Assembly (NCBI GenBank): GCA_946965045.2
Contig: OX337238.1
Location: forward strand, 3,100,001 to 3,164,000
Direction of reading: 5' to 3'
Length of the DNA: 64,000 bases
From: Epithemia pelagica
Lineage: Eukaryota; Protista; Bacillariophyta
Shown here: one piece after another, positions 6,150 to 26,012 of the stretch
How positions within the stretch are numbered: the stretch's first letter is position 1
Layout: every line of letters starts with the position of its first letter
Made by a program: the position numbers and the translations under genes
The notes under the pieces: generated by a model
Databases searched by the model: none
What the model saw: the letters and a program-made list of their open reading frames with translations, nothing else
Told to the model about the DNA's origin: nothing

Positions 6150-6481
6150 TTTTTCGCGATCCACAGATCAAGACGCTGGCCCTGTACAATCTAAGACTTT
6201 CAAGTGAAAAGCCTTCTCAATGCGCGACGAATGTTCCTCGCCACGTGTAACCTTTTGCTCTGTACCAATCCACTTAGCAAAAGTTGATCAACAACCCGAA
6301 GAACATGCGCTCCAAAGCTGTTGAAAATGAGAGTGACTATCGTTCCCGTAGAGTGGTTAGATTGAGAAACCGACAAGTCGAATCTGGAGTTGACATGGGG
6401 TGGTGTTTGCTGACCGTGTTACTGGGATGATCCAATGTGCTGGTAGGCAAGTGCCGTGGAAGAAGAACCAGCCCTTCTGAA

Positions 6482-8123: not shown

Positions 8124-8496
8124 AAGAGCAGCGGCATGTTATAGTAGTGATCAATCCCTCGAGAAGACCCCATAATCCTGTGAAACTTGTAGAAAAGGAT
8201 AACTGGATGAAGCCCATAACCTTTTAGTGACAATTATTGCTTCTCATATTTGAGTAGCCCCGTCAATGCTTGTAGATCGATCCTGACGATGGAACTTATT
8301 GAGGTCTGCTGCTGCCATACGTACGAACGCGATTCACCTTGACCTTTCCAGCTGAACGGCATCATGAGAGTCTGTCAGCATTGACTCGGAACTTTTGTAA
8401 GGTCCGCTCTCGACGATTCTGAAATCGATCTGCTCGGATCTCGATCGTTCAGTATCCCATGGTCACAAGAACGGGTGTCGTGTGTCGTTTTGTACC

Positions 8497-8636
8497 TGTG
8501 CGCCAGCGACAGGACACTCAGGTAGCTACACGTAGTCTAGCTAGATCACACTAGCTATGTCTAGGAGTCTGCCAACAGCAGCCATGGAGCTCAGAGTTTT
8601 TGGAGCAACGCAATCTTTACCAAGTTTGCTGTTGGT
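8497..8636 (+). repeat. Split direct repeat A1 (140 bp)
   Basis: Identical by eye to 18547-18686. Confidence 0.95.
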
Positions 8637-11600
8637 GTTTTTCTTCCTTTCTTCTTTCTTTCTTGTCTTTGCCTTTGCTTCCTTTGTCATGTCGTTATCC
8701 TTCGCTATTAATCCTACCCTTCGCGGATTAATCTCTCCCGATACGACCCAGTCGTTCCTTTCGTTCTCCCCTTCTGGTTTGTTCAAGCCTGTGGCATCCA
8801 CCACAACCTATCCAAATCAGTTCTCCGGCATGTCTCCTCTTCACCCTACCGATCTCCAAAACTCTAAAGACTTTATTTTCTTGTCCCCTGAAGAAAAATC
8901 CAAGGAAATCCAGAAGGAATTTTTGGCCAATCTTCTTTCCTTGAATTTTGGGCCAAATAATTCCTCTCCCGACGCTACCGTAGTCACTTCCCCTGCCAAG
9001 TATACCCTGGCTGCAGACTCACCTACTATTGCCGGCTTCCTAGCCGTTGTCCAGCTTGACTCGGCTCCCACCACCGATCCCAGCAAGCTTTCCTCCAAAA
9101 TCCCACCCCCGTCCGGCCCTTACCTGGTTGTCCTCGGGCCCACGGCGTTTGCCTTCAACGGAAAAGGCTTGCAAGCACATGTATTTTCCGATACCCCCCA
9201 GAAAATCAGCTCCTCGCAGTTTCGTTTTCCTACAACGTTAATTGCCCCTGCGTTCGCTTTCCAATCGGGCATCCGTCCCCAATCCATTTCACAACTTAAC
9301 CCCTACTCGTGGATTACTTCCCACCCCAGTTCCATACTGGCCTCCCTCCGTGCTCACCGAGCCCTTTTTTCCACTGTTATCCTTGAACAGTCTACGTCAC
9401 GCCTCCACTCGCCTGACGACCCGTGGCATTCTCTTTGGATCCCCTCCCAAGACTCCCCCCCACATGCCCATCAAATTTTCTCGCGCCTCCATCGCGTCGA
9501 CGAACCCATTCTCACAATTCAAGTTGAGAACACTTCTCCTATCGAGGGCTCCTGGATTGCTCTTTCCGCCCTTCCCCTTCCTCGTCATCATCATCTTCCT
9601 ATTGGTCTCCTTTTCGATCCTGCCTCCATTCCTGACTCCGCCAGTTTAATTAACGCTATTCTTGGTTGGAATCAAACCTACAACCCGATGCCAGCCACTC
9701 GTTCTTCCCATCTCAAAGACTTGGCAACAACTCTCTCTTGGCTTGACGTCCCCTTTGTCAACGATTGGCTCCTCACCGTGAGTCAACGCGCCGACGACTT
9801 TGCTACCGTTTGGCACACTTCCAAACAGATAGCAACCGACCTCACCACCCTCAAGAACGTCCCCATCTCTACCAACCTTCCCCGTTCTTATCCGGCTCGT
9901 ATCCACCCTTATGAAGCCCTGTTTGTGCATCCTTTCTTCTCCCTTACAACCAAGCTTTTCTCCGATGCACTCCTCCAAAACAATCCGTCCCATACCATGC
10001 GAACCAAATTCTTCACTTTCTTTCGGGAGAAAGCAAACATGCTATCCTCCCAAGACGTCGACCTGTTCCTCCCTCAAAACATCCCTCACGTGGACAACAC
10101 CCACACATACGTTCCTTTCCTCTTTCGCCCTCAAACACAGTCGTGGTCCACCTCCTACGGTTTCAAATCCTTTTCTTCCTTTGATGTCCAAAAATACCTT
10201 CCGGATTTTTTGAATCACCTCCCAAACGATCATCTCGCTCAACGCGTCATCTCCACCCCACACGATCGGTCACCATCTTCGTCCCTCAACCCACCCCAAC
10301 CCAACACGGTTACCCGTTTGAATGTCGATTCCCCGGACAAACCCTCGCAAAAAAACCCTCCTTCCTCTCCCCAGACACCGGAAGTTCGACCATTCCCTCT
10401 GGAACCTCCCGCAGAAAGCCTCCCTCGTCGTCCTACAGCCTTTCACCCTCCAACGGCTCGCATTCCCTCACCAGCAGCCCTGGACCCCTCGCCACGGTTT
10501 CCTGCCCCAGTCCCTGTCTCTCGTGTTCCTCTGCAACCCCAGCAGATGGAACCACAACAGCGTGCTCCTCCAACCCCTCAGCAGCTGGAACCACAGCAGC
10601 CGCCACCTCAACCCCATCAGAATCGTCTCCTCGTCGGTCCGGACCCACCGCCGTTTCCCACCCAACACCCCATTCAGCAACTTCCGCCTCGTCCTCCCTC
10701 GCGACAGGAGCATTTCCTCCCCCCCCTTCCTCCCCCCCGCCTCCAGCGGTCTCCTTCCACCTCTACAGCCAATGCCTACTCCAACGCCTCTCCTCATGCA
10801 CCCCACAACCCACCACGTAGACCCACTCATTATCACCCAGCCTCTCCAGCCATGGAGTCCTACCACTCCCAATCCTTCAACCCCTTGGCGCACCAACGTC
10901 AGGCCTGGGACGCACCCCTGGTTTCCACCACTACCTCACCCTGGTATCTCCCGGTTGACAACCCAACTTGGTTTACGAGCACACGGCTCAAATATGTGCA
11001 TTCCACCTTGGCTTCCTCCGCGTATCTTCCCCTCATCCGACGCACCATGGAAGAGCGCGGTCAATTTACTTTTGACCGCTTTATTTTCCAAGACACCGAC
11101 CAACTCCCACCTCATGTAGTCCAATGGGCCTTCCTGGGCATCGTTGCTCTACCTACGGATCTACGTTTGGTTGACCCCAACTTGCCCACAACCACGAGAC
11201 GTCCCTCCTATTCCCACGAGCTTCTCCATACCCCCAGCCATCTCAACAACGATTGGCTGCGCCAAGTTCTGCCCTACGCAGGCGCTGATCATCGCAGCTC
11301 TGCCGCCGAGGTAGCGGCCATTGACCTCCTCGCCGCCGCCATTGAAGCTTCCCAATACCCGGTGGCTCCGTTCCGCGTCGATTTTTCTCAGTCTTTCCTT
11401 CACGCAGAAGCCCCGCGTAAAGCACTGAGAACATTCCGTATCAACGCAGGTCAGACTCTTCATCTCGACGACCCTAAGTCATTATATCTATCCCTCACTC
11501 CTTGGCACTTCCTCTGGTCCATCCCCTTGTCCCCAGAGGGTCGCCTCCCGCAACAAGGTCTCTCCTGCACCCAGTTTAAGCTGTTCTTCCATCATATTGT

Positions 11601-12657
11601 GTTTTTCTTAAACACAGTACTCACCAACGACGACTCCTTCCCCCAATTCCCTCCAGGTTTTAGCCCCTTTCTTCTCCGCGGTCCCCTTGCCGGTCAATTG
11701 CTTTGGGCAGCTCATCAGTTTGATCAAGCTCAAACTCGAGATGCATGGTCGACATTGGCTTCCTCACAACCCAGTCACACGCTACAACTGTCTCAGGCCC
11801 TTCTCCATCACACCTGTGACCTGTTTCAACAATTCCTCCGCTGGGGCGCCCAGAATCGTACCAAAATAGCTTGCCCCGCCACCGCAGACCCTGAAGGCTT
11901 TGTTCCCCAGTGCACTCTCATCTACGATGTGAGCCCGCACTCAACCGACTCAAATCTCACCTACTGTTTGGATTGGAGATCCACCTTTACCCTTTTATTT
12001 ACGGCTCCTACAATACTCTCCCACCAACACACCAACTCCATGTCACCCTTGTTTTGCCGCTCCACCCCCAACTATCTCCTACCATCTCGTCCTGATCACC
12101 GGAGTGACTCTCGTTCTCCTCTTGAACGCTACGATCGTGCCCAACGGCGTCGCTCCCCCTCGGACCGTCCTCCTGACCGTGCTGCCGACCAACCACCGCC
12201 CAAGCGTGCTCGTTCTGACTCCGCTCAACCCCAACGTCGCCCTGGCCAAAAAGCTCTCGTCCCGCTTGTCACCCTCACTGCGGCAGGGAAAGAACGTTAT
12301 ACCCACTCAGGTAAGCTCCTTGCCGACCTCGCGTCTTCCCTCACCATTCCCCGTTTCGACCAAAAGCAATATTGCTTTATGTACATCGACAAAAACTCTG
12401 TTGTCGGGTGCACCGGTCCCCATCGTTCACGCACAAACTCGGAAGGTCAACCGTTGCAATGCAATCGACACCACGTCTGCCTTTCTCCCCAGGCTATCTC
12501 CAACTGGCCCCAATCCTCCCTTAAACCGCTCTGGGAGTTCTGTCACCATGATCGCGTTCGACACCTTCTCCAACCTACACCGGAATTTGCAGCCCACATG
12601 GCTTCAGACCGTCCGAACCGTCCAAACGCCTCCCAACAACCCCCGCCCTCATCGTGA
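8557..12657 (+). CDS. ORF1, gag-like protein (up to 1366 aa; true start may be a downstream ATG such as 8830)
   Basis: First ORF of the element, with a Pro/Gln-rich middle. C-terminal Cys/His cluster YCFMY...GC...QCNRHHVC (~12370-12480) resembles the zinc finger of YR-element gag proteins. Confidence 0.7.
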   Translation: MSRSLPTAAMELRVFGATQSLPSLLLVFFFLSSFFLVFAFASFVMSLSFAINPTLRGLISPDTTQSFLSFSPSGLFKPVASTTTYPNQFSGMSPLHPTDLQNSKDFIFLSPEEKSKEIQKEFLANLLSLNFGPNNSSPDATVVTSPAKYTLAADSPTIAGFLAVVQLDSAPTTDPSKLSSKIPPPSGPYLVVLGPTAFAFNGKGLQAHVFSDTPQKISSSQFRFPTTLIAPAFAFQSGIRPQSISQLNPYSWITSHPSSILASLRAHRALFSTVILEQSTSRLHSPDDPWHSLWIPSQDSPPHAHQIFSRLHRVDEPILTIQVENTSPIEGSWIALSALPLPRHHHLPIGLLFDPASIPDSASLINAILGWNQTYNPMPATRSSHLKDLATTLSWLDVPFVNDWLLTVSQRADDFATVWHTSKQIATDLTTLKNVPISTNLPRSYPARIHPYEALFVHPFFSLTTKLFSDALLQNNPSHTMRTKFFTFFREKANMLSSQDVDLFLPQNIPHVDNTHTYVPFLFRPQTQSWSTSYGFKSFSSFDVQKYLPDFLNHLPNDHLAQRVISTPHDRSPSSSLNPPQPNTVTRLNVDSPDKPSQKNPPSSPQTPEVRPFPLEPPAESLPRRPTAFHPPTARIPSPAALDPSPRFPAPVPVSRVPLQPQQMEPQQRAPPTPQQLEPQQPPPQPHQNRLLVGPDPPPFPTQHPIQQLPPRPPSRQEHFLPPLPPPRLQRSPSTSTANAYSNASPHAPHNPPRRPTHYHPASPAMESYHSQSFNPLAHQRQAWDAPLVSTTTSPWYLPVDNPTWFTSTRLKYVHSTLASSAYLPLIRRTMEERGQFTFDRFIFQDTDQLPPHVVQWAFLGIVALPTDLRLVDPNLPTTTRRPSYSHELLHTPSHLNNDWLRQVLPYAGADHRSSAAEVAAIDLLAAAIEASQYPVAPFRVDFSQSFLHAEAPRKALRTFRINAGQTLHLDDPKSLYLSLTPWHFLWSIPLSPEGRLPQQGLSCTQFKLFFHHIVFFLNTVLTNDDSFPQFPPGFSPFLLRGPLAGQLLWAAHQFDQAQTRDAWSTLASSQPSHTLQLSQALLHHTCDLFQQFLRWGAQNRTKIACPATADPEGFVPQCTLIYDVSPHSTDSNLTYCLDWRSTFTLLFTAPTILSHQHTNSMSPLFCRSTPNYLLPSRPDHRSDSRSPLERYDRAQRRRSPSDRPPDRAADQPPPKRARSDSAQPQRRPGQKALVPLVTLTAAGKERYTHSGKLLADLASSLTIPRFDQKQYCFMYIDKNSVVGCTGPHRSRTNSEGQPLQCNRHHVCLSPQAISNWPQSSLKPLWEFCHHDRVRHLLQPTPEFAAHMASDRPNRPNASQQPPPSS

Positions 12658-12714
12658 CTACCGGCACATCATCGCCCAGGTTCAACTTGCGCCCGTTCGC
12701 CGTGGTCTGATGAA

Positions 12715-15567
12715 ATGCCTCCCACTTCACCAGAGACATTTTATCCCACCTCTACGGCAGATCTTCTCCTCTCCCTTCCCGCTCCCACTACTGAGGCTGT
12801 CCCTACTGTCCCCAAACTACCCGTATTTCCTTCTCACCCACGTGCTGCCCCCTCTCGGGTCTCCTATGCGTTGCCAACGTTGCACACGGTGTTAACCACC
12901 GTCAACCCCTTTTTGACCGACGCCGATCGCTCCCAACTCCTCCTTGCCTCTTCCTCCTTGGTGCCCAACTGGGGAATTCTTCCCCTGTTCCCTCTCTGGT
13001 CGTTCACACACCATCGCAAACGAATTGGTTTCGGTCCCGACCGTCTCAACGTCGGCACATCCCATGCTGCTCCTGACGGCACTCCCCTTGCGGCAACCGC
13101 ACCACATGTTGTTTCCCCTGAATTGCTCGGCCACTACGCATGGGATTTTTTGTCCCCACAGGACCAACAAAACCTAGTCGCCTCCTCGCCAAGCTTCCAC
13201 TTCTATCATCGTCTCCGCGTTGCCGCTGCTCATGGCACCTCTCTCGCTGTCTGTCGCATGCCCCCCTGCGAAGACAAATCCCAACCCCTTCCATTCCGTA
13301 AGGCTTTTCTCCTTGCCGTTGCCCTTTGTCGCGCAAACTTCGTCTATGCGGACATGTACCGCTGGCTTGGTGGAATCTACAATAATCATCACAGACGCCT
13401 GGCAGACACCTTCGACATCATCGACCGCGTCAAAGCTTTTGAGCCCCCACCGGACTATCCACGGTTGGACTATGCCCGCACTTGGCAACTTTTTCACCTG
13501 GGCGCCCCTCTCGCAGGCCACTATTCCTGTAGTCGTGTTGCCGTTTCCCACCGCAACCTCCTTGACAACTACCCCGGGGTCCAAGAAAACTTAGAGGAAA
13601 TCACCAAAAAGTTCAAGAAAGAGGAACAGCTACAGTATCATCCTTTCCTTCCCCGCATTATCTGGCGGTTCCTCCCCGGTCTTTTCCTTTCACTCATTAA
13701 CTGGGTAGCGCCCAAACCCCACCGCATCGGCGACACCGGCCGCTTGTGCATCGATCCAAGCTCCAAAATCACAGCCACTGATGACGGCAACACCAATGCC
13801 CAAATTCCTGATGCTGGACGTGACGATGACTGTAACCCCGCGGTGGCTTACGGCACGGCTTTCCTACGCTTTTTGCGGTACATCTACAATCTGCGTATTG
13901 ACCACCCCTCGGAAGACATACTGCTCAGCGCCGATGATATCAGTGCTGCCTTCCGTCGGGTCACATACAACCCCAACGCTGCCTTAGCATTTGCAAGCGT
14001 CCTCGGCTGGTTCCTCATCATACCCGTTGGAATGATTTTTGGCGCCAAAAACAGTCCTTCCTACTACATGCTACCGGGGGAGCTACGAGCCCATCTCTCT
14101 CGTTACCTTGCTGAGCTCACTTCCGCTCGTACTCTTTTGGCGGACACCATTGCTATCCCACCTCCTCCGTCCCCCCGCACCCTCAGAACCTTAACGCCCG
14201 CCACTCCAGACGCTCTAAATCAAGGCACCTCCCACTTGTTAGCATCCCAACCGTCCTCCTTCCCTCGTCCGGTGTATGCTCCGTTCGTTGACGACACCGG
14301 TGGAGCGGCCATCCGCTCGGAGATCCACCGGTTAGTCAATAGCAGTATTCTCGCCGCATACGTCACCTTCGGCTTCCCCGACGAAGACCCCCATCGACCC
14401 GATCCTATTAATCCAATAAAATTTGTGCGTGACATCAGTCACAGCCTGAAATTCCTGGGGTATATCATCAACACTCGAACTATGACAATTTCCTGGCCGT
14501 CCCATAAACAGACACAACTACAGGTCTATCTTCAACACGCCCTCGACCTTCCCACCACGCACTCCGACGGGCGTCGGCTTTCACCGCAAATGGCGGCCAC
14601 AATTCTGGGCCTCGTCCGTCACAGCGCCCCAGTCTCACTCTTGGGCATCTATTACACGTTGTCCCTCCAGTATGCACTCAACGACCGCCTCCGTGCCACC
14701 GCAGCAGCAGGCAAATCCACCCGTGCCGCCTCCTTTTGGCACAAAACCCGGTTCACCCTCAACCGAGAAACCGTTATGGACCTCCGAACGCTCTTGGCCA
14801 CCCTCCATTCTTCTCGGACCCACATTTGGACCCGTCCCATTGCTTTATGCATCCCGCGTGTTTCGCAATTTGAAATTTTGGGCGACGCTTCCATTGAAGG
14901 GCTGGGAGGCTGGTTATCCACCCACTACCCCTTCATGTGGAGACTCACCAAACCCGACTTACTTCGCCTGGGCTTCATCCTACCAAAAGATATGCAGTCC
15001 ACCAAATTATCCGATCCAACTCAAGACACGCCCGATGCACTGTGGCACATCAACTTGCTTGAATTCGTCGTCCTTCTCATAAACTTCTGGTTCTTGCAGC
15101 GACTGGCTTCTCACGCTACACCGCAACCCCAAACCCTTGTCATCTCCATGCGCACCGACAACACGTCGGCGCTCTCGTGGCTCTCCCATGCCGCCCGTGC
15201 CAAGCGGCCCGCAACTCGTCGTCTTGCTCGTCTTTTTCAAGCCATGCTCACTTCTGCCCCTATTCCCGTTCAATTACAGGCCTCGCATATTGCAGGCGAG
15301 CTCAATCACAATGCCGACCTGTTGTCCCGCCCGTCCCTTGCGCCCACTTGGGCCTCCGTTATCGAGCAGTCCAAGCCAGTGCTGGACCCATCCACCGCCT
15401 ACCGCGTGCCCTCCAAGTTGCTATCAATGATATTAACAAGCTTCAAATTCACCAGGACCGAGGACGAACTAGGAACAAGAATGATCGAACTTTGGACTCT
15501 CGAGGCGCTCACTTTTCCCGATGGTCCGCTCGCAATCACCTCACCCCCGAACTTTTATCTCGCCTGA
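12715..15567 (+). CDS. ORF2, reverse transcriptase + RNase H, 950 aa
   Basis: RT motifs RLCID, SADDISAAF, GMIFGAKNSP, FVDD. RNase H motifs GDAS..GLGG, HINLLE, TDNTSA, HIAGELN..ADLLSR. Confidence 0.92.
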   Translation: MPPTSPETFYPTSTADLLLSLPAPTTEAVPTVPKLPVFPSHPRAAPSRVSYALPTLHTVLTTVNPFLTDADRSQLLLASSSLVPNWGILPLFPLWSFTHHRKRIGFGPDRLNVGTSHAAPDGTPLAATAPHVVSPELLGHYAWDFLSPQDQQNLVASSPSFHFYHRLRVAAAHGTSLAVCRMPPCEDKSQPLPFRKAFLLAVALCRANFVYADMYRWLGGIYNNHHRRLADTFDIIDRVKAFEPPPDYPRLDYARTWQLFHLGAPLAGHYSCSRVAVSHRNLLDNYPGVQENLEEITKKFKKEEQLQYHPFLPRIIWRFLPGLFLSLINWVAPKPHRIGDTGRLCIDPSSKITATDDGNTNAQIPDAGRDDDCNPAVAYGTAFLRFLRYIYNLRIDHPSEDILLSADDISAAFRRVTYNPNAALAFASVLGWFLIIPVGMIFGAKNSPSYYMLPGELRAHLSRYLAELTSARTLLADTIAIPPPPSPRTLRTLTPATPDALNQGTSHLLASQPSSFPRPVYAPFVDDTGGAAIRSEIHRLVNSSILAAYVTFGFPDEDPHRPDPINPIKFVRDISHSLKFLGYIINTRTMTISWPSHKQTQLQVYLQHALDLPTTHSDGRRLSPQMAATILGLVRHSAPVSLLGIYYTLSLQYALNDRLRATAAAGKSTRAASFWHKTRFTLNRETVMDLRTLLATLHSSRTHIWTRPIALCIPRVSQFEILGDASIEGLGGWLSTHYPFMWRLTKPDLLRLGFILPKDMQSTKLSDPTQDTPDALWHINLLEFVVLLINFWFLQRLASHATPQPQTLVISMRTDNTSALSWLSHAARAKRPATRRLARLFQAMLTSAPIPVQLQASHIAGELNHNADLLSRPSLAPTWASVIEQSKPVLDPSTAYRVPSKLLSMILTSFKFTRTEDELGTRMIELWTLEALTFPDGPLAITSPPNFYLA

Positions 15568-16589
15568 CCGATAACGAATGCATACACATCCTACACCTTT
15601 ACCTACATCACGTCACAAACGGCGAAAACTACTACAGGAGGTCCGACCTAGCAGCAGATACCATTCAATCTTATGTAACGGCTGCCCATTCCGCACTTCA
15701 GGTTGCCCTCAACCGCCCTGTTAACATCTCCAACCCAACCAACTCAACCCTGCTGCACCCACTGCTATCCGACCCATTACAATTTCATCGTCGCTGGCAA
15801 CGTCCACGCGATCGTAAGGAACCCATCACCGATGCCATCCTTAGCGTGCTCTATTGCCGTGCAGTCGGGGCCCCTCCTTCGTCACTTGACGCAACTCTCT
15901 TCGACTGGGTCCGGCTTGGCCTCTTTACTGGCTCCCGTGCCAGTGAATTTGCCCAAACCTCTGGCTCAAAGTTTGTCTTCGCGGCCGTTCCCAATTGTCC
16001 TAATGATCCATCCTGGAACGATCGACCTATTGCCTTTGTCTCCAGCGACTTCGTCTTCTTAACTCAAGCGAACGACATGCTTCCACTTGCTTCCCTCCCC
16101 AAACACGAACACACCGTCTCGGCAGTCCAGATCCGCTTTCGGCATGACAAAAGCGCTCATAATTTCACGAAACGCATCTTCCGTCGTTCCGGCCACTCTT
16201 ATCTCTGTCCCGTGCTCGCATCCTGTTCAATTGCCCGCCGCTCCCTCTCCCTCCAAATCGGCGCCCACCTGCCCCTCGCCTCCTATCAGGTCAAACCGGG
16301 AAAAATAGCCTACCTTAGGTCGGCCGATATCATCACAGCCCTCCGTCAAGCTTGCCTGGAGGCGTACCCAAACCCTCACAACTACCACCGGCGTCACGCC
16401 CACTTGCTCGTCGCCCATTCTACACGCGTCACAGCCGCTGTAGCGTTGTGGAACGTTCAAATTCCCCTCCCCCAAATTGCCTTCCGACTCCGATGGCAAG
16501 AAGACTCGATCAAACACTACCTCCGTGACTGCTCGAAAGCAATTGGTCCTCATAGTCAAGCGGCCATTGCAGGCGTCCTAAATATTTAA
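15063..16589 (+). CDS. ORF3, tyrosine recombinase (open frame overlaps ORF2; no upstream AUG)
   Basis: Catalytic residues in order: GLFTGSRASE (R), FRHDK (K), HSTR (HxxR), RW (W), HY (Y). Confidence 0.9.
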   Translation: MRRPSHKLLVLAATGFSRYTATPNPCHLHAHRQHVGALVALPCRPCQAARNSSSCSSFSSHAHFCPYSRSITGLAYCRRAQSQCRPVVPPVPCAHLGLRYRAVQASAGPIHRLPRALQVAINDINKLQIHQDRGRTRNKNDRTLDSRGAHFSRWSARNHLTPELLSRLTDNECIHILHLYLHHVTNGENYYRRSDLAADTIQSYVTAAHSALQVALNRPVNISNPTNSTLLHPLLSDPLQFHRRWQRPRDRKEPITDAILSVLYCRAVGAPPSSLDATLFDWVRLGLFTGSRASEFAQTSGSKFVFAAVPNCPNDPSWNDRPIAFVSSDFVFLTQANDMLPLASLPKHEHTVSAVQIRFRHDKSAHNFTKRIFRRSGHSYLCPVLASCSIARRSLSLQIGAHLPLASYQVKPGKIAYLRSADIITALRQACLEAYPNPHNYHRRHAHLLVAHSTRVTAAVALWNVQIPLPQIAFRLRWQEDSIKHYLRDCSKAIGPHSQAAIAGVLNI

Positions 16590-16657
16590 CTACCACTATT
16601 CACATCTAATGTATCTCACTATTCTGTTATGGTATCACTATTTCGTCCGCTCCAACC

Positions 16658-17248
16658 TTAAATCCTCGCTATGTTCTTGTCCGCTCGAGAATAACGCACG
16701 CCATTGTCGGTCTCCACGTGGATACGTGCGTCTGTTACCTTCACCACCCGCCCAGTTGGGTCAGCGGGATCGTTTGGGTTTCGAATCCGAACCCGCTCAC
16801 CAACTTTGAAACGCTCCTCCGATCCACGGCTCGCCCGCCGACCCATAAATCCACCTTGTGTTCGTGGACTCGTACGTCCACGGGGACTCGGTCCACCCAC
16901 CCCTTTGCTTGCCACTCGCCAGACCCATCTTCCTCCACGGGCCGTCGACCCTTCCTCTCGGCCCCGTGGTGTGCCCTCTCGCATTCCTTCTCTGCCCGTA
17001 GGACCCACTCCATCGGGCTCCCACTCCCCCCCTCCTCCTCTGTTGGCCACAGCTGCGTTCGCTGCCGCCACCACATGAATCGCCTGCTCCACTCTCCTCT
17101 CCGCCAATTCCTTCAATTCGAGCAATCGACTAGAGATCTCCACTTGCCTCTCCGCCATCCGTCCCAACTCTCTCATAATCTCGGCCATTTGAGCCTGCCT
17201 ATCCGCCATCTGATCCAGCTCGTCAATCAACTCGGCCATCTCCTCCAT
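16658..17248 (-). CDS. Antisense cargo ORF-B: coiled coil, Arg/Gly-rich linker, C-terminal KOW/SH3-like domain (~196 aa)
   Basis: Heptad-rich N-terminus. C-terminal FKVGERVRIRNP...TGRVVKVT..RIHVETDNG pattern. ATG 2 nt after the ORF-A stop. Confidence 0.65.
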   Translation of the reverse strand: MEEMAELIDELDQMADRQAQMAEIMRELGRMAERQVEISSRLLELKELAERRVEQAIHVVAAANAAVANRGGGGEWEPDGVGPTGREGMREGTPRGREEGSTARGGRWVWRVASKGVGGPSPRGRTSPRTQGGFMGRRASRGSEERFKVGERVRIRNPNDPADPTGRVVKVTDARIHVETDNGVRYSRADKNIARI

Positions 17249-17250
17249 CT

Positions 17251-18255
17251 TCACTCACTGTCTGATTCCGACTTCGACGCGCGTCCCGAAGAATCGCCAG
17301 ACAGGATAACCACTTCCGGTAAATGTTTCTTCCACGTCAACCGCTCGTCCTCTGTTGCCGTGTTCTCCCTCGTCGCCGTATTCTCCCTCGTCGGAGTTTC
17401 CTTAATCGATTTCTCCCTTGTGGGAGTTTCCTTGATCGACCCCAGGCCTTTCTCCTTGGGCGAAACACTCGCGCTCCTCTTCACAGGGGCAATGCTCTTG
17501 CGCTGCTTTTTGGGTAGGGTACTGAAACCCGGTTGGCCCAACCACTCTTCCAACGAACGCTTCTCGCGCTTCGAAAACGCTTCACCAGTTCCTCTCCCTT
17601 CGGACCTCTTTTTACCCGCCTCGGGTTTCTTATCCTTTCGGTCGGATGCTGCAGCAGCCGTCGCGGCTCTCCCTCCGGGAACTGGCACAGGCAATCCACG
17701 GCGGGCAGAGTTCTGCGCGAACAACTCACGAACAACGGCCACTTTTCGTTCCACAACCTCCTCTGCAGAAGGCCTCTCCCGTCCGCCAGCCAAGGCCAAT
17801 CCACAAATCTGGTGGAAAACGACTTCTTGGTCTTCCGGGTGCGGAAACAACAGCTCTAGAGCCACCACGACCTTCTTGTTGCTTGGAGATGCTCTTCGAA
17901 ACACCGTTTCCACGAAGTCTTCCCCGTCCCCTCCTTCCTCCGCAAAAGTCTCACACACACGGGTCACCAGTCGATCGATCTCCGCTTGATGGTCGCCCAC
18001 CAACTCGCGCACGTTTTTCTGCGTCTGAATCACCGACGCCTCTTTGGATGCAAGTATTCCGCCATGCACGTCTTCCAAATGTTGACGCTCCTGGGCGTGC
18101 AACACGCGAGTCTTATCCAGCTCTGTTTGCGCGATATCCACTCCTCCTAAAGCGCAGTGCAATTCTTTGCGTTGTGCCTCGACAACTGTTTTTAAACGAT
18201 CCAGTTGTTCAGCAGTTGTTTCGCTTTCTTCTGTTCTCCGAGCTGCAGAACTCAT
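17251..18255 (-). CDS. Antisense cargo ORF-A: 334-aa coiled-coil protein with NLS-like and SIM-like motifs
   Basis: ATG start, helical E/K/R-rich composition, PKKQRK, repeated KETPTRE, terminal EVVILSGDSS...SESDSE. Confidence 0.65.
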   Translation of the reverse strand: MSSAARRTEESETTAEQLDRLKTVVEAQRKELHCALGGVDIAQTELDKTRVLHAQERQHLEDVHGGILASKEASVIQTQKNVRELVGDHQAEIDRLVTRVCETFAEEGGDGEDFVETVFRRASPSNKKVVVALELLFPHPEDQEVVFHQICGLALAGGRERPSAEEVVERKVAVVRELFAQNSARRGLPVPVPGGRAATAAAASDRKDKKPEAGKKRSEGRGTGEAFSKREKRSLEEWLGQPGFSTLPKKQRKSIAPVKRSASVSPKEKGLGSIKETPTREKSIKETPTRENTATRENTATEDERLTWKKHLPEVVILSGDSSGRASKSESDSE

Positions 18256-18372
18256 CTCACCTCTTCCGCAACCGTATCTTTGTGCCCATGTCCTACGCCC
18301 TCCAATTGTCCTATCGGCTACTCCCTCACACTCCGCAGTCAGCTGTGGTGGCTAGTCAAGGCAAAGACATGT

Positions 18373-18546
18373 GGTGCAGACGCTAGAGGGTTAGATCCCG
18401 ATGATCTACTCCTCAGCGTTTCCGCTGTTGGCAGGCTCCCGATGACTCCTAGTCATCAGAAGCCACAACCAACCAGCGGAGTCTTTCCCTAAAGCTACCA
18501 AAGGACTGCAGCGTTAGCAAGCAATTCGCCGAGGGCAGGCGGATTG
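18373..18546 (+). repeat. Split direct repeat B1 (174 bp)
   Basis: Identical by eye to 18703-18876. Confidence 0.95.
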
Positions 18547-18686
18547 TGTGCGCCAGCGACAGGACACTCAGGTAGCTACACGTAGTCTAGCTAGATCACA
18601 CTAGCTATGTCTAGGAGTCTGCCAACAGCAGCCATGGAGCTCAGAGTTTTTGGAGCAACGCAATCTTTACCAAGTTTGCTGTTGGT
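18547..18686 (+). repeat. Split direct repeat A2
   Basis: Abuts B1 directly (GGATTG|TGTGCG); copy of 8497-8636. Confidence 0.95.
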
Positions 18687-18702
18687 CCCACCACTCCCTC
18701 CC

Positions 18703-18876
18703 GGTGCAGACGCTAGAGGGTTAGATCCCGATGATCTACTCCTCAGCGTTTCCGCTGTTGGCAGGCTCCCGATGACTCCTAGTCATCAGAAGCCACAACC
18801 AACCAGCGGAGTCTTTCCCTAAAGCTACCAAAGGACTGCAGCGTTAGCAAGCAATTCGCCGAGGGCAGGCGGATTG
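18703..18876 (+). repeat. Split direct repeat B2
   Basis: Copy of B1, separated from A2 by a 16-bp spacer CCCACCACTCCCTCCC. Confidence 0.95.
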
Positions 18877-19925
18877 GTATGACGAGCAGACGAAAGATAC
18901 CGGTGTTCTGGCTATCCGCATATGGACTTGGATTCGGAGTCGCTTTGGATTGGCTCTAACAGGCATTATCATACTGGTTTTCACAGTAATTTGCATGGTC
19001 ATGCATTTATTTGCGTGTGGATGCATCGTTTTCGCAACGCGCCGGAAGAAGACAAGCTACTCTGTGAAAAAGTTGTTGGCTGCAAACCATCTTACCGTTT
19101 CGTACGGAGCCGCTTAGGTAGCCCAATAGCTCGTACTAGCAACTCGTGCTTCTTGGTAGTATAGGAAAAAGTTCGCGAGACCGTTCCTAAAGACTCTTGT
19201 AGTGGTGTTGAACAAACATGAATTGCACAGTGGTGGTGAACAGTCGTCCGATAGTGTTATTCCCACTTGCACTGAATCATCAACCATCCATCGCTGGTTT
19301 GTTCCATGTCGCGATGCTACTGACCGAGTGGTCAGTGGCGAACAATATGAATCTTTGTTGTCATTGAAATCACGGCATTGTGTCTCTAGTGTCATCTATC
19401 ATCTATTCGACTGCTAATTCCTTGTTTTTTCCGAGGAGACTGCTGTTTCCTTGTTTTGTGATCGTCCATCATCTAAGTGTACCAATCATATTACAGCAAT
19501 TCACATCATTGGATTGCGATGGTTCCTTCGGCAGCAACTACATTCAGAATCCAGTGTTGTCACGGTGTTTCCGACATCAACTCATTGCAACCATTCACCC
19601 ATGCCTAAAATGACGAATCACCAGTGAAAAAGCTTCAATCGTTCTGGTATAATGAATAGAATTCTCCTTGTCAAGGTACTTTGTCGTGACGCAATGCATT
19701 CCGACGAGAATACATCTGACATGCCGTCGTCGTCATGGTCAAAAAAGTTTCTATGCGACAGAGAAAGATATGAAGCGTGTCGATGGACGGACGAAAGATC
19801 CAACAGGACTGTGCGCTTTCACGGGATTTATCTCCGATACCTGCGATCCCAACGCGAACAGAAAAAGATCCAAAACGCAGAGCGGAATCTTTTTTTCTGA
19901 TGCAACAATCCCATGTCCAGTGTAG

Positions 19926-21089
19926 ATGATTTGGTCCCTGACGTTGCTACTCGGATGGTGTGTCGTGACGCAAGCAAGAACGATGCACGAGAATGCCACC
20001 ATGTCAGGGCTTGTCTTTGCCAACTTGACAGACGATAAAGAGCCGCAATGGAATGATCAAGAAATTCCTCCGCTTCGGGGTGGATGGCGTTACAAACATG
20101 CTTCGGTAGTCGTTGCGAATCCGGAAAATGCAGAGGATCAAACTATTGTGGTCTTTGGGGGACAAACAGATGCTGTATCTCCCACTGATTCCGTCATTTT
20201 GTTAACTTTTGGAAAGCACCACACTACGAAATGGCGAGAGGGACCGAAAATGAACGAAAAGAGGAATGGACATGACGTTGTGGTCTGCAATGGGTGGGTG
20301 TATGCCATTGGAGGGTTTGTCATGGGAGTGGATGAAGGCAAATCCTACTCGGATGCGATTGAAAGAATTCGAGTTGCAGACTTATTGGAATCGTCTTTGG
20401 AAAGCAACCGAAAGAATTGGACGACATTGGATGTTCGATTGTCCTCACAAAGAAATGAATTCACTGCGGCTGTCGTTCGGAATCGGTATATTGTTGTTGC
20501 TGGAGGGTTAGGGGTAGTAAACAATTCTGTTGATTCTTTGTCCACGGTTGAGATTATTGACACGGAATCAAAAGGTGGACCAGTTGTCATTCAAGGACCA
20601 TCTTTGAACGAAGCTCGATATTCACATGGAACCGCGGTGATTGGAAATCGTGTCTACCTTGTCGGTGGGGGCGGGAGAAACGGTGAGTTGGAGTCGGTGG
20701 AATATCTGGAGTTTCGTACAGAAAAGAGCTGTAATGAAGACATTACCTTTTTGTCTTCGTGGACCATGGACAAGAATCTGTCTCTTGTGGAGTCACGTAA
20801 AAGCCACGCTGTGTTGAATTTGGGATTGAATCTGGTTGTGGCAGGAGGATATACGGGATTTTCCTTGCTCAAGTCTGTCAAAGTCTTGGACACGAAAGGC
20901 CGAGTGGTTTGGCACCTACCCAATATGACCATAAAACGGGATGGATGTTCCATGGTGGCAACAGCCAATGGCATTGTTGTAGTTGGTGGATACGGTCATG
21001 ACTCGTGCGAGATACTTCCACTCCTCATCAAAAAGAAAGCACAAAAACTCCACTTCAAGATGAGATATAAACCCTCACTGTTACCGTGA
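19926..21089 (+). CDS. Kelch-repeat protein K2 (copy 2)
   Basis: Protein differs from 3148..4311 at one residue seen (S>L). Confidence 0.75.
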   Translation: MIWSLTLLLGWCVVTQARTMHENATMSGLVFANLTDDKEPQWNDQEIPPLRGGWRYKHASVVVANPENAEDQTIVVFGGQTDAVSPTDSVILLTFGKHHTTKWREGPKMNEKRNGHDVVVCNGWVYAIGGFVMGVDEGKSYSDAIERIRVADLLESSLESNRKNWTTLDVRLSSQRNEFTAAVVRNRYIVVAGGLGVVNNSVDSLSTVEIIDTESKGGPVVIQGPSLNEARYSHGTAVIGNRVYLVGGGGRNGELESVEYLEFRTEKSCNEDITFLSSWTMDKNLSLVESRKSHAVLNLGLNLVVAGGYTGFSLLKSVKVLDTKGRVVWHLPNMTIKRDGCSMVATANGIVVVGGYGHDSCEILPLLIKKKAQKLHFKMRYKPSLLP

Positions 21090-21363
21090 ACAACATGGAT
21101 GTGATTCAAGCCAGGATCCTATTGTTTGACGAATCCATGAATTGGGATGCCGGTGTACTGGCTATCACGGTAACGGACAACCGGCTTGATCTCGCAGCGT
21201 ACGATCAACTGTCTGCAGTTTGGACTGGATTTCTACCTAACGATTTGCCACACTCAAAGAGCAAATTGTTTTCATAACCCGACGGAACCATCTTGCCTAA
21301 AATCGGATTACTATATCGTATCCCAATTACATCAAGTCGCTACGTTGTCTCATAATCGTCTCT

Positions 21364-23129
21364 TCAAACAAAACACCAAAATGAAAAGCAACGATTCAAG
21401 TACTTCTGGTTCGTGGCAATTTTGGATTGAAGAATCTCCACTTTTCGGAGAAGGGGAATTTTTTCTCGCATGCCTTCAATCGTCTGCAGGATGGACTGGA
21501 TCTCGTCAAGGTCGGCTTGAAGGTCTTTCACAGAGCGGAATTTGTCATCGCTCAAAAGAGATTCCGTTGCAACATGAAACAGAACAATCCATGTACTCCT
21601 GGTTCGTGGCAATCCTTGATTTAAGAAACTTGACTTTTCGCACAAGGGGGAGTTTTTCTCGCATGAGTTCGATCGTTTCGATTTTGGTCTGGATCTCGTC
21701 AATTTCGTCTTGTAGGTCCTTCACTGAGCGAAACTTGGCGTCACTCACGATGGATCTAAGAACGACAAGCAAATCTTGTGCATCGGCGCCCTTTTGCACC
21801 ATTTCTTGGTCGCTGTATTCCTTTCCAGCCTTTTTCACAATTGATTCGAAGTATTCTATTTCTTTTTCGAGCTCCGCCCGACAGGAAAACTTGTTCTGTA
21901 AAGGGACCAGGTGGAAGTAAGATATGATGTGAGAATTTCTAAAAAAAACTGTATTAGCAGAAGGAGAGTTCTGCAGCGTACCTTTAGTTCTTGTTTCTTT
22001 GTCATGAGTGGAAGTGTCTCACAAGAGTCTACCTCGTATCCACCAATTACAACAATGCCGGATGACGTTACAACCATGCTGCATCCTTTCCGTTCCTTCT
22101 TCATATTCGAAAGGCTCCAAGTGACACTGTCTTCGGTGTCCAAGACTTCTACCGACTTCAACAAGCCCGATGTGCTCTGCCCTCCTGCCACCACGACACT
22201 TGACCCCAAACGCAAAGCAGCGTGTTCGGCACGTGACTCAAGAAGAGCAAGATTCTGGTCCACAGTCCAAGAGGACGAGAAGGTCACGTCGCTGCTGCTG
22301 TTCATCTCAATTAAACTCTAAATATTCCAACGAGTCCAAGGTGTATGAATATCTAGAGCCTCCAACAACGTAAACACGATTCCCAATCACAGTCATTGCA
22401 CGGCCATTGCGAGCATTGTTCAGAGATGGCCCCGAAGTCACAACAGGTCTGCCCTTTGCCGCAGTGTCAAGTATATTAACATAATAGCCATTAATAACAA
22501 TGTACCGATTCCGAACGACAGCCGCAGCAATTTCTTCTCCTGATAGGGACAATCGAGCATCAAGTGTCGTCCAGTGCTTTCGTTTACTTTCCATTGACAT
22601 GTCCAATAAATCTGCAACTCGAATATATTCAATTATTCAACCGTGAGTTACCATCATACCCTCCGATGACATAGACCCAACCATTGCAGACCTCAACGGC
22701 ATGACCCCTTCTCTGTTGCTTCATTTTTGGTCCCTCGCGCCATCCTTTCGGGCTCTTTCCAACATTCAACAAGATAACGGAATTAGTAGGATCCTCATGT
22801 TCTGTGCGTCCTCCGAAAACCGCAATGGTTTGTTCCTCTTCATTATCTGGATTCTCAAGGACTACCGAAGCATGTCGGTAACGCCATCCTCCTAGAAGCG
22901 GGGGTATGTCTTGATCATTCCATTGAGGGAAGTTGGTGAATACAAAGCCCGACAAGGTTGCATCGTCCTTCATGGTAGTTTCTCGCGCCACGAAAAGCCA
23001 TCCGAGCAGCAGTGCAACGGACCGAGCCACGAAAAGCCATCCGAACAGCAATGCCATGGACCGCCACCATTGTAGGGGAACCACTTGGTTTGGCGAAAAG
23101 GATGGATCAGTATGCTTGTTCAGAGACAT
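21364..23129 (-). pseudogene. Kelch-repeat pseudogene K3 (copy 2) with intact leader
   Basis: ATG 23129 (MSLNKHTDP...WWRSMALLFGWLFVARSVALLLGWLFVAR). Shares both frameshifts with copy 1 but lacks its deletion and extra stop. Confidence 0.85.
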
Positions 23130-23562
23130 TGTAGATAGACTGGTAGCAGTCTCAACCGAGATCCTCCAGGCGTTATGAGATTGCTCCAACGAATGAGCTA
23201 AACTTTCCGGTAAAAGCTGTCCAGGATACGTTTTTCGCGATCCACAGATCAAGACGCTGGCCCTGTACAATCTAAGACTTTCAAGTGAAAAGCCTTCTCA
23301 ATGCGCGACGAATGTTCCTCGCCACGTGTAACCTTTTGCTCTGTACCAATCCACTTAGCAAAAGTTGATCAACAACCCGAAGAACATGCGCTCCAAAGCT
23401 GTTGAAAATGAGAGTGACTATCGTTCCCGTAGAGTGGTTAGATTGAGAAACCGACAAGTCGAATCTGGAGTTGACATGGGGTGGTGTTTGCTGACCGTGT
23501 TACTGGGATGATCCAATGTGCTGGTAGGCAAGTGCCGTGGAAGAAGAACCAGCCCTTCTGAA

Positions 23563-25216
23563 ATGGTCTTTCTTTCAAGTGAATCTGAAACTCCAGAATG
23601 GAAGTCGTTTAAACTACCACAAGCTGTTAAAGGAGTGTTGCGTGGTGATCATACTACCGTTGTCCTCCCGCATGGTGAAAAGGGAAAAGAGCCAACTGTC
23701 GTTGTCTTGGAGGGATACCAAGAATATGGAGTTATGATGAGTTTACAAGTCCCTTGGATATTGAAGAGAACAGATGATTTGACTAGGAAGGCATCATCCG
23801 TTTTCCTTCTGAATCCACAAGTCGGCAGCTCCACTTCACGAAAGGGACCCGACCTCAATGGTGGGAAATCATGGAATCTTCAATGGGGCCATACAGCTAT
23901 GGTCTGTAAGGGGAGTTTATACGTCATTGGAGGATATCGAGCGTCCTTGGAGTTTGAAACCCTCCAACGTATTGGTGTTGCTGATTTGCTTGAAACAACA
24001 TCAGTCAACATGAAATGGTCGACGGTCTTGATTTATCGATATTGGTTTCCAAGATATGGCGGATGTGCGGCGACCGTTGTCCATGATCGTAATATTTTGG
24101 TTGTTGGAGGACATACGGGGCTCTTTACATTGAGCTCTGTTGACATTATTGATACCGCCGCACCGAACGGACCTTTACGGATTTCGGGCCCATCCATGCA
24201 CGAAGCTCGGACGGGATGTGGCATTGCTGTGACTGGCCGACGAATCTACGTGGTTGGTGGTCACAATGGATACAATGTGTTGAACTCGGTGGAGTATCTC
24301 GAATTCAATGACGTGTCTCACGATGATACAAGTGACAACGTATCTTCTGTCTTTCCGTCGTCGTTGTCATGGAAAATGCACGAGACTCTGGCTCTCAATG
24401 TTCCGCGTCGAAATCATGCCATTGCGACAGTGGGATCCAATATTGTCGTCGCAGGAGGGTTTGACGGCAGCAGTAGTCTCAGGTCTGTTGAAGTTTTGGA
24501 CACTCAACGAAACATAGTTTGGAACCTTCCATCAATGAGAAAAGAACGAGTTGGTTGCAGTATGGTTGCCCTCTCTACAGGACTTGTGGTGACTGGAGGA
24601 GCGGGGGATGATTCCGCTGAGACACTTCCATTGAGTGAAACACGAGAAACACTCCTGGTAAGAATCTCTTTGAACTGCATGTATCTGTTGTTCCTTGTAT
24701 GGTACTTCGTTACCTCATGTCAAGTTCAAACGCTCCGGTTGGTCCTTTCTGTAGAAGATGCTGTCTTGTCGTGCCGAGCTTGAGATGGAAATCGAAAAGC
24801 TTCACATGGCAATCTACCGTGTCACGATGGAGTTTCACGATGAAGACGTTCTGGAACAAGGCATCAAGGCACAGAGACTACTACCAATTTTTGAATCTCT
24901 TGCAGAGGAAGACCAGTTCCGATCCATTGAATTCATGCAAGAAGAAATTGAAGAGCTTTCGAAAGAATTGGCAACCGTGCAAGTCATTCAAGAGAGACTT
25001 CCTCTTGTTCGTAAAATCAAAATGCTTCAGACCAGAATCGCCATGAACCATGCTTTCATGGAAGAGCAAGAAATGGACAACTCAGCTAGGAGAGCTATAA
25101 CCGCCAGTGATGACTTGACCTTGTCGTCTGAGCCGCGATCAACTTTTGAGGATACATGTGCATTTCATGCGTTTCAGGATGATCATGGCCACGACAGTGA
25201 GCTTGCGTTTTCGTAG
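23563..25216 (+). CDS. Kelch-repeat + coiled-coil protein K4 (copy 2; exons 23563-24657, 24755-25216)
   Basis: Intron 24658-24754. Exon 1 is near-identical to copy 1; exon 2 is diverged. Confidence 0.8.
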
Positions 25217-26012
25217 AAGAGCAGTGGCATGTTTTAGTAGTGATCAATGTCTCGAGAAGACGCCATAATCCTGTGAAACTTGTAGAAAAGGATAACTGGA
25301 TGAAACCCACTACCTTTAGTGACAATTATTGCTTCTCATCTTTGAATAGCGACGTCAATGCTTGTACATAGATCCTGACGATGGAACTTACTGAGGTCTG
25401 CTGCTGCCATACGTGCGAACGCGATCCACCTTGACCTTTCCAGCTGAGCGGCAATCATGAGAGTCTGTCAGCATTGACTCGGAACTTTTGTAAGGTCCGC
25501 TCTCGACGATTCTGAAATCGATCTTCTTCTGATATCGATCTTTCCGTCCGTGTATCATTGTCGCAGTCACACTCACACGGTGTCGTTCTGTACCGTACGA
25601 CGAGCAGACGAAAGATACCGAATGACTGAAACCGTAACGGGACTAAAAGCTAGGTCAACCTTGTAGGCCTAGACGAGTACCTAGCGTACTTCTTGGTCTT
25701 GAATGGACTATATCTGTTGCAACAATCCGCCGAGCGCCTAGGATTCGAACCGATAACAATCAGTCACATCCCGTTGGTCATGTTGACACGATAAAATGCT
25801 CCTATGAGCATCTGAATTGGTTTTTTCTATTCCAACAAAGACTTACTGCGAAAGGCCTCTCTCAAAAATTCTTATATACTTGAATCATGATTAAAAACAT
25901 GCATTACTTGACTATCGTTGCTTCGATGAAATTGTCTTTCAGTCCTTGGACTCCTTCTTCTCTGATACACACGAACATCTAGTTTGGGCATCAGCCATTC
26001 CCATACCACATT

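Follow-up and report, generated by a model that had tools for sequence, protein, structure and literature searches.

Do two antisense open reading frames (ORFs) inside a retrotransposon encode proteins, and if they do, at which step of the element's life could those proteins act? The question is raised by a retrotransposon with split direct repeats that occupies positions 8497-18876 of a 64,000-nucleotide (nt) stretch of the genome of the diatom Epithemia pelagica (contig 11; GenBank OX337238.1, positions 3,100,001 to 3,164,000). This whole stretch is called the window here, and all positions without another label refer to it. The element is a split-direct-repeat (PAT-like) tyrosine-recombinase (YR) retrotransposon, and the two ORFs, designated ORF-A and ORF-B, sit between its YR gene and the direct repeat B1, convergent with YR. 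A first-pass annotation, made from the letters of the window alone, had described them as tightly coupled accessory genes beyond the usual gag, reverse transcriptase (RT), RNase H (RH) and YR set, and had suggested a nuclear complex that counters silencing or targets integration. We found that both ORFs are real protein genes of the element. ORF-B belongs by sequence to a family whose members are normally the first, sense-strand ORF of Ty1/copia retrotransposons, which is the main fact that the first-pass annotation overlooked. The coordinates, the stop/start junction and the 68-nt distance to the YR stop codon given there were all exact when the window was read again, and the features that matter for the analysis of selection are as follows.

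15177-16589, plus strand: YR ORF, the reference for the strength of selection (ratio of nonsynonymous to synonymous polymorphism [pN/pS] of 0.14 in the same copies)
16590-16657, no strand: spacer of 68 nt between the converging stop codons of YR and ORF-B
16658-17248, minus strand: ORF-B, 196 amino acids (aa), stop codon included in the coordinates (TAA at 16660-16658)
17246-17256, minus strand: junction between ORF-A and ORF-B
17251-18255, minus strand: ORF-A, 334 aa, stop codon included in the coordinates (TGA at 17253-17251)

The cassette stretch was searched for in the diatom's own genome (60.5 Mb in 23 contigs), which holds 10 copies with 95 to 100% DNA identity. Both ORFs are intact in nine of them, the reverse of the ORFs being broken or absent in most copies, an outcome that the first-pass annotation had named as telling against its proposal. 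The tenth copy (C7:2624164) has a TGA inside ORF-A and a frameshift inside ORF-B. Among the nine intact copies, the lengths of all insertions and deletions are multiples of three: a 24-nt difference in ORF-A amounts to the loss of one IKETPTRE repeat unit, and an 18-nt in-frame loss in the linker of ORF-B is found in four copies. The pN/pS ratio, computed among these nine copies in place of the dN/dS check proposed earlier, was 0.28 for the whole of ORF-A (bootstrap range, 0.18 to 0.47) and 0.31 for the whole of ORF-B (0.17 to 0.52), values that are not neutral. By part, ORF-A gave 0.10 for aa 1-110, which hold the N-terminal coiled-coil part and are its most constrained region, 0.18 for aa 111-190 and 0.49 for aa 191-334; the C-terminal barrel of ORF-B gave 0.14. 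Variable sites were distributed over codon positions 1, 2 and 3 as 22, 19 and 41 in ORF-A (82 in total) and as 14, 6 and 29 in ORF-B (49 in total). When each ORF was read in its other frames, four of the five had pN/pS ratios of 0.67 to 2.3, and the antisense frame that has its wobble position in common with the ORF gave 0.43 (ORF-A) and 0.33 (ORF-B), as expected. The 68-nt spacer, with a mean pairwise difference of 3.7% among copies, evolves like unconstrained sequence. Given the intact copies, the in-frame insertions and deletions and the pN/pS ratios, both ORFs are coding and are needed by the propagating lineage; they are genes under purifying selection about as strong as that on YR. In this respect, and in the coupling of the two genes described below, the data agree with what had been claimed.

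Two loci show opposite patterns. At L004 (G000:C4:246557-251329), both antisense ORFs are intact and the YR ORF contains one stop codon; at L005, the YR ORF has no stop apart from a 2-base gap, and both antisense ORFs are broken.

The arrangement recurs outside the family of the window. An antisense pair, A then B, lies downstream of YR in two diverged YR families of the same genome, L048 and L046. In L048 (C6:880900-890899), RT and YR are on one strand, and the opposite strand carries an ORF-A-like gene, split by a frameshift, followed by a 177-aa ORF-B-like gene. The order is the same in L046 (C7:3201200-3211199), where a truncated ORF-A-like gene codes for 171 aa and the ORF-B-like gene (L046 positions 5344-6554; G000:C7:3206543-3207753) is split by ca. 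0.5 kb of unrelated sequence between coiled coil and barrel; this copy is decayed. ORF-B is 34 to 47% identical to its counterparts in L046 and L048, and the central region of ORF-A is 40 to 49% identical to the ORF-A-like genes of the two families, with 21 invariant columns. The antisense A-B unit is conserved across three diverged YR families.

The predicted ORF-B protein has three parts.

17042-17245, minus strand: N-terminal acidic helix, a putative coiled coil (aa 2-69; isoelectric point [pI], 4.7)
16817-17038, minus strand: disordered Arg/Gly-rich (RG) linker (aa 71-144; AlphaFold2 confidence [predicted local distance difference test, pLDDT], <50)
16661-16816, minus strand: C-terminal five-strand SH3-like barrel (aa 145-196; pI, 10.4)

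In a word-indexed search, ORF-B looked as isolated as ORF-A. An exhaustive search with a profile built from the YR versions returned 178 clusters at an expect (E) value of ≤1e-3, among them P0015 and P0024, which match the profile over positions 17-195, that is, over both helix and barrel. Typical members are 95 to 130 aa long and have in common an N-terminal amphipathic helix with conserved leucines, of which L28 and L31 scarcely vary, and the barrel motif F.[IV]GDRV.I.N...G.V..[IV]T..R[IV]...T..G....RAPxN; in an alignment of 34 members, N157, G166, R188 and N192 are invariant. Judged by these likenesses, ORF-B is a long-linker member of a widespread, unnamed family of proteins with a coiled coil and a basic barrel. 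Six long multidomain matches (P0005, P0017, P0026, P0115, P0133 and P0138) were rejected as members, being repeat proteins with short GDRVRV-type barrel repeats, which we take to be MIB/HERC2-type and KOW-type domains.

The genomic context was read for five relatives on metagenomic contigs or contigs of other assemblies (L054 to L058), and in four of the five the family ORF is the first ORF of a Ty1/copia element. In L054, from another assembly of this organism, it lies between identical 300-bp long terminal repeats (LTRs), directly 5' of a 1757-aa gag-pol gene with a CCHC knuckle and RVT_2. L055, L057 and L058 have a layout like that of L054, with gag-pol products 41 to 61% identical to the one in L054, and the small ORF is separated from the next ATG by 36 nt in L055 and by 5 nt in L057 and overlaps it as ATGA in L058. 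This sense-strand position between the 5' LTR and gag-pol is not the one that ORF-B has in the window, where it lies on the antisense strand beyond the 3' end of YR, as the second gene of a pair. Within the diatom's own genome, ORF-B-like matches include intact 183-aa frames on five contigs. Where their context could be read, relatives of ORF-B lie in YR or copia elements (for L056, see below), and several own-genome matches (e.g., C16:56221 and C7:914090) stand outside that count. The question posed earlier, whether homologues occur only in YR elements, therefore has two answers: yes for ORF-A, every relative of which is in a YR element, and no for ORF-B, which is found in copia elements too.

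A tree of the ORF-B family (133 members, 104 columns) has 75 of its 130 forks open and shows neither a single YR clade nor a direction of transfer. Because the family is large and diverse in copia contexts, and its presence in YR elements is seen in this organism only, the simplest reading is that the YR lineage captured ORF-B, most likely from a copia element. In the diatom CoDi copia elements, an ORF1 preceding the polyprotein has been described, with no function given (Maumus et al. 2009; PMC2806351). The first ORF of CoDi-type Ty1/copia elements resembles ORF-B in a match at the level of the hidden Markov model, the N-terminal helix, the basic barrel with GDRV.I.N...RAPxN and the tight stop/start spacing; the published CoDi ORF1s themselves are likened to it by position. 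ORF-B differs in its antisense orientation, in its place at the 3' end of a recombinase element as the second gene of a pair, and in its linker of ca. 75 RG-rich residues.

Two further settings of the family are worth recording. The fifth relative, L056 (JGI metagenome 3300061219, contig of 5578 bp), is a two-barrel member with an ATGA overlap with a 701-aa ORF, and that ORF contains the motif LE.LFP / LELMFP twice, like the one in ORF-A. The pair converges with a Cys-rich (CXC-like) protein and a protein with a C-terminal His..Asp..Cys pattern that is ULP-protease-like, and L056 might represent a DNA transposon equipped with the same accessory protein. At L044/L051 (G000:C6:1668000-1687999; matches at C6:1673289-1705273), a Ty1/copia element lies inside a tandem array that repeats every 10,510 bp, and each unit holds an ORF-B-like fragment (40% identity, three TGA stops) opposite to broken pol ORFs.

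The AlphaFold2 model gives the ORF-B helix a mean pLDDT of 85 to 98 per 10-residue block and places the barrel strands at 152-195 (pLDDT, 80 to 89); the linker has a pI of 11.7, with 21 Gly and 14 Lys plus Arg. A coiled coil, an RG linker and a barrel of KOW/SH3/Tudor fold had been read from the sequence, and the model and two structure searches concur. Foldseek matched the barrel to Tudor domains (PHF1, PHF19, MTF2 and TDRD3) and to Spt5 KOW with template modeling (TM) scores of 0.7 to 0.8 and root mean square deviations (rmsd) of 1.4 to 1.8 Å; for the Tudor matches PHF1, PHF19 and TDRD3, the figures were TM 0.72 to 0.82 and rmsd 1.4 to 1.9 over ca. 53 residues. The VIA structure search gave Z scores of about 8 (8.1 to 8.2) to PWWP, Tudor, KOW and NusG. 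Against PDB sequences, the best match of the family profile was a nitrile hydratase beta barrel (E value, 2.8e-4), followed by weak matches to eL14 (0.003 to 0.05), eL21 (0.01 to 0.1), Spt5 (0.16 to 0.18) and bL19 (within 0.003 to 0.3). Across 133 family members, the barrel has a median pI of 11.1 and a net charge of +6, and an aromatic residue exceeds 30% in one barrel column only, the Phe before GDRV (81%). With a single commonly aromatic column, there is no methyl-lysine or methyl-arginine cage. The five-strand SH3-like barrel is thus common to ORF-B and the Tudor/royal family, but the aromatic cage of three to four residues of those readers is absent from the ORF-B family. The fold is also that of KOW motif proteins, although ORF-B has the KOW glycine pattern only in part and the E values are too weak for membership. 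We take the barrel to be KOW-like and probably nucleic-acid-binding, carried on an oligomerizing stalk.

ORF-A has a different character, as its parts indicate.

17935-18216, minus strand: N-terminal long helix, a putative coiled coil (aa 14-107; pLDDT of 76 to 89 over aa 11-70)
17671-17883, minus strand: central region (aa 125-195) with the motifs ALExLFPHPxD and RRxLPVPV
17497-17631, minus strand: basic clusters KKPEAGKKR (aa 209-217) and PKKQRK (aa 248-253), by pattern like a nuclear localization signal (NLS)
17254-17316, minus strand: EVVILSGDSS, like a SUMO-interacting motif (SIM), plus a Ser/Asp/Glu-rich tail (aa 314-334)

AlphaFold2 modelled ORF-A with a mean pLDDT of 51, as a helix at 14-107, short low-confidence helices up to 185 and disorder thereafter; the N-terminal helix is its one confident part. 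The motifs that had been described for the two proteins are all there (PKKQRK, IKETPTRE twice and EVVILSGDSS with its tail in ORF-A; the RG-rich linker and the C-terminal five-strand barrel in ORF-B), and the basic clusters and the SIM-like motif of ORF-A also recur in the diverged families. A motif SLEEWLG lies between the two basic clusters, and both the clusters and the pattern F..E..SL..WLG recur in L046 and L048. The aligned place of the SIM-like motif reads EVVYLVGSSEESEE in L046 and EVTVHSASSGVDESKE in L048. The SIM pattern ([VI][VI]x[VIL] plus an acidic/Ser flank) fits the window (VVIL+SGDSS...SESDSE) and L046 (VVYL+VGSSEESEE), and L048 (VTVH+SASSGVDESKE) only in part; changes within the family of the window are conservative (I317V and D321E).

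Word-indexed searches, run with the single sequence and then with a profile, turned up relatives of ORF-A in the same species only, namely a protein of 96% identity that belongs to a different assembly of this organism. A PDB sequence search returned nothing, and an atlas search with a best score of 0.80 was uninformative. Two matches were rejected: a metagenomic one, a chance ALELLFPHP likeness in a bacterial contig, and one to the N terminus at C3:3309501, which has host-like genes around it and no element ORFs and was put down to chance coiled-coil similarity. On these searches, ORF-A is a lineage-restricted orphan, a coiled coil with a disordered tail, found only in YR elements of this species. 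Because the antisense strand is poor in T and prone to ORFs (see below), a de novo origin of ORF-A there is conceivable.

How the two genes could be expressed together is suggested by their junction. The window and its two closest copies read GAGTGAAGATG, i.e., TGA, AG and then ATG, and the other seven of the 10 copies read GAATGAAGATG, an ATGA overlap of stop and start. The junction is TAAATG in L046 and TAG, 12 nt and ATG in L048, so that the stop codon of A and the start codon of B overlap or lie 0 to 12 nt apart in three element families, a spacing of the AUGA/UAAUG termination-reinitiation type. The closeness is kept and the relative frame is not, a pattern that favors reinitiation on a single mRNA over readthrough or frameshifting. 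Termination-reinitiation at UAAUG or AUGA is used by the non-LTR retrotransposon SART1, calicivirus VP2 and influenza B BM2. In these systems, as here, stop and start overlap or lie a few bases apart between two long ORFs; for the cassette, reinitiation is the proposed mechanism.

Three sequencing runs of one study were available: X2 and X3, which are DNA (contigs of 440 to 509 kb), and X1, of unknown kind. Their contigs, aligned to the element, gave coverage throughout and two low-depth joints with the noncanonical ends GT..GG and GA..GA, which were taken as noise; no canonical splice joint was present among the contigs aligned there, and no splice donor is conserved across copies. In X1, over window positions 13500-19400, the summed depth was ca. 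23,000 to 26,000 at 17440-18030, inside ORF-A, versus ca. 140 in the flank. X1 (longest contig, 10.4 kb) might be RNA; its depth sums many short contigs and is not interpretable.

The noncoding sequence upstream of ORF-A and the remaining parts of the element are listed here.

8497-8636: repeat A1, 100% identical to A2 (18547-18686)
18373-18546: repeat B1, 100% identical to B2 (18703-18876)
18373-18876, no strand: repeats B1/A2/B2, the 3' end of the element, proposed in the first-pass annotation as the promoter region
18256-18372, no strand: 117 nt from the ORF-A start codon to B1, near-invariant
Plus strand: ORF1, proline-rich, 1366 aa
12715-15567, plus strand: RT/RNase H ORF

The 117-nt segment is 99.1 to 100% identical in all 10 copies, versus ca. 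6% divergence at synonymous sites of the neighboring ORFs, and across copies repeat B is 99.2 to 100% and A2 95.7 to 100% identical. Positions 18256-18546, together with B2 (18703-18876), are a strongly constrained cis element. It could work as a promoter or leader for antisense expression, or the sense cycle could use it for template switching or recombination.

Taken as a whole, we favor, at somewhat better than even chances, the reading of the cassette as a selected, element-borne antisense pair in which ORF-B is a nucleic-acid-binding cofactor at a step common to copia and YR elements and ORF-A is its adaptor. A and B would be read from one antisense mRNA, with ORF-B translated by termination-reinitiation at the ATGA or TGA-AG-ATG junction. 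ORF-B would oligomerize via its helix and bind element RNA or complementary DNA (cDNA) via the RG linker and the basic barrel, and in that sense would work like LINE-1 ORF1p or a nucleocapsid-type chaperone. Given that the same protein is found in integrase and in recombinase elements, it would act at a step that both have in common rather than in YR-specific integration: RNA handling, assembly of the particle or ribonucleoprotein, or nuclear entry, and not the chemistry of integration. ORF-A, with its basic clusters and SIM-like motif, would serve as an adaptor, delivering the complex to the nucleus or chromatin. LINE-1 ORF1p has an N-terminal coiled coil for oligomerization, an RRM and a C-terminal domain. 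The likeness to it and to retroviral nucleocapsid, a functional analogy only, is that of a retroelement-encoded protein with a coiled coil followed by basic nucleic-acid-binding parts; the fold of ORF1p (RRM and C-terminal domain) is unrelated to the SH3-like barrel, and ORF-B is not on the genomic RNA of the YR element.

Several points weigh against this explanation. A copia element of the L054 type, with a CCHC Gag, already has a nucleocapsid function, and a second chaperone looks redundant there. Unlike LINE-1 ORF1p, a protein made from an antisense RNA is unable to bind the genomic RNA, which is sense, in cis. The L056 member lies in a non-retroelement context, and the direction of transfer rests on abundance alone, the tree being unresolved. 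Nucleic-acid binding is deduced from charge and fold, and SH3-like barrels also bind peptides. The sequencing runs are DNA or of unknown kind, and the antisense transcript, the bicistronic mRNA and reinitiation are proposals. A complex prediction of ORF-A 1-190 with ORF-B 1-75 scored 0.00 to 0.01, which is evidence neither way.

Other explanations differ in what they make of the same observations. That the ORFs are functionless by-products of skewed composition, or recently captured host fragments, could draw on the base composition of the element. GC skew is -0.28 to -0.42 over window positions 8000-18000, the plus strand being C-rich, cassette included; as the skew also spans the part coded on the opposite strand, it is a property of the element and not of codon usage. 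The C-rich plus strand makes the minus strand of the cassette poor in T (17.7%), and long ORFs arise easily there: in 2000 dinucleotide-preserving shuffles of 16590-18372, the longest minus-strand ORF had a mean of 118 and a maximum of 321 aa, with none reaching at least 334 aa. The plus strand also holds a 423-aa ORF (16718-17989), and ORF-A is an orphan made mostly of helix and disorder. The 423-aa ORF was rejected as a gene, its pN/pS ratio of 0.96 in its own frame over the ORF-B region being neutral and marking it as a by-product of composition. Purifying selection acts, in contrast, in the frames of ORF-A and ORF-B and in none of four of the five others of each, the fifth having a common wobble position. 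Neither ORF looks captured, the fate that the first-pass annotation had listed as a possible refutation: no host paralogue was found, and own-genome relatives are in transposons wherever their context was seen. The cassette recurs at 34 to 49% identity in other element families. As a full explanation, the by-product reading has next to no chance and is already refuted by the intact copies, the selection and the 178-cluster ORF-B family. That A and B form one fusion protein through splicing, readthrough or frameshifting at the junction is very improbable. The end of ORF-A in the window reads CAGTGAGT, which resembles a 5' splice site, and A and B are in the same frame in L046 and L048, parted by a stop or by a stop plus 12 nt. 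The donor is not conserved, however, being GTGAAT in seven of the 10 copies with no GT at that place in L046, and the contigs on the region are without a canonical-end joint. ORF-B is out of frame with ORF-A in the family of the window, so simple readthrough fails; it starts at an ATG of its own in each family, and some homologues are free-standing.

The remaining alternatives accept both proteins and give them other roles. A nuclear complex that counters host silencing or steers the element to SUMO-marked chromatin, as proposed earlier by analogy with VANC of VANDAL transposons, with A supplying NLS and SIM and B a chromatin-reading barrel, is in our judgment unlikely. The basic clusters and the SIM-like motif are kept at their aligned place within fast-evolving disordered sequence, the best structural matches of the barrel include chromatin readers (the Tudor domains of PHF1, PHF19 and MTF2; PWWP), accessory genes common to unrelated elements would fit a host-directed function, and some antisense extra ORF products of plant LTR elements are nuclear (PMC7264820). 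Yet the barrel, with one conserved aromatic position, is without the cage of methyl-lysine or methyl-arginine readers, its sequence-profile matches are KOW-type and ribosomal barrels rather than Tudor, and disordered proteins often contain short stretches that look like an NLS or a SIM. None of the searches produced a relative with a name or an annotation, VANC itself not having been compared directly, and the A-B complex prediction gives no verdict here either; nothing specific supports the anti-silencing idea. A broader version, in which a nucleic-acid- or chromatin-binding ORF-B oligomer moved between copia and YR elements as a portable host-interaction module, ORF-A arose de novo on the purine-rich antisense strand of the YR element and became a SUMO/importin adaptor, and the pair takes the replication complex to SUMO-marked chromatin or blunts silencing, seems to us rather unlikely; if true, no accessory-protein system would have been described before it for tyrosine-recombinase retrotransposons, and the pair would exemplify operon-like translational coupling in a eukaryote. 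Finally, the cassette might restrain the element as a form of copy-number control, its antisense RNA feeding RNA interference (RNAi) or its proteins being dominant inhibitors like Ty1 p22. The antisense unit overlaps the sense genomic RNA for ca. 1.6 kb in its 3' part, the copy number is low (10 in 60.5 Mb), regulation through double-stranded RNA is raised as a possible role in a review of plant antisense extra ORFs (PMC7264820), and DIRS-1 is under tight RNAi control (PMC7192593). Selection at the amino acid level (pN/pS ratios of 0.1 to 0.3) would nonetheless be superfluous for a purely RNA-level role, and the sense orientation of the copia homologue of ORF-B excludes antisense pairing as the general function of the family; we regard self-restraint as quite improbable.

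Antisense extra ORFs located between pol and the 3' LTR have been described in maize Grande (gene23), rice RIRE2, Silene Retand, Phaseolus PvRetro13 and Botrytis Boty (brtn) (PMC7264820; PMC11963269); their function is not known, and some of the products are nuclear (PMC7264820). The cassette resembles them in position, orientation, presence in most copies, lack of database homologues and a suspected nuclear role. Theirs are Ty3/gypsy LTR elements with a single ORF each in the review, whereas here a coupled pair is found in a tyrosine-recombinase element of a diatom, and we found no sequence relation to those antisense ORFs. The cassette has the properties by which aORF-3R are defined (a conserved antisense ORF between the last pol-type gene and the 3' repeat, present in most copies; PMC7264820), in a YR rather than an LTR element. 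Tyrosine-recombinase retrotransposons have been described with GAG, RT, RH and YR only (PMC7192593), and in the literature on them we found no report of an antisense coding cassette. We rate the cassette as a variant of the known antisense extra ORFs of retrotransposons in the setting of a YR element. With one of its genes common to copia elements, unrelated retrotransposon orders would appear to exchange accessory genes. The shared step narrows the search for a function and makes ORF-B a candidate for a new retrotransposition cofactor in diatoms, a group whose transposon biology has received little study, and the ATGA-type junctions would allow reinitiation downstream of long ORFs to be studied in a naturally occurring eukaryotic case.

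The flank of the element at window positions 19926-24783 holds paralogous Kelch-repeat-like genes on both strands (387 aa and 421 aa, with fragments of 99 to 213 aa), and the element is inserted within this local gene-family cluster.

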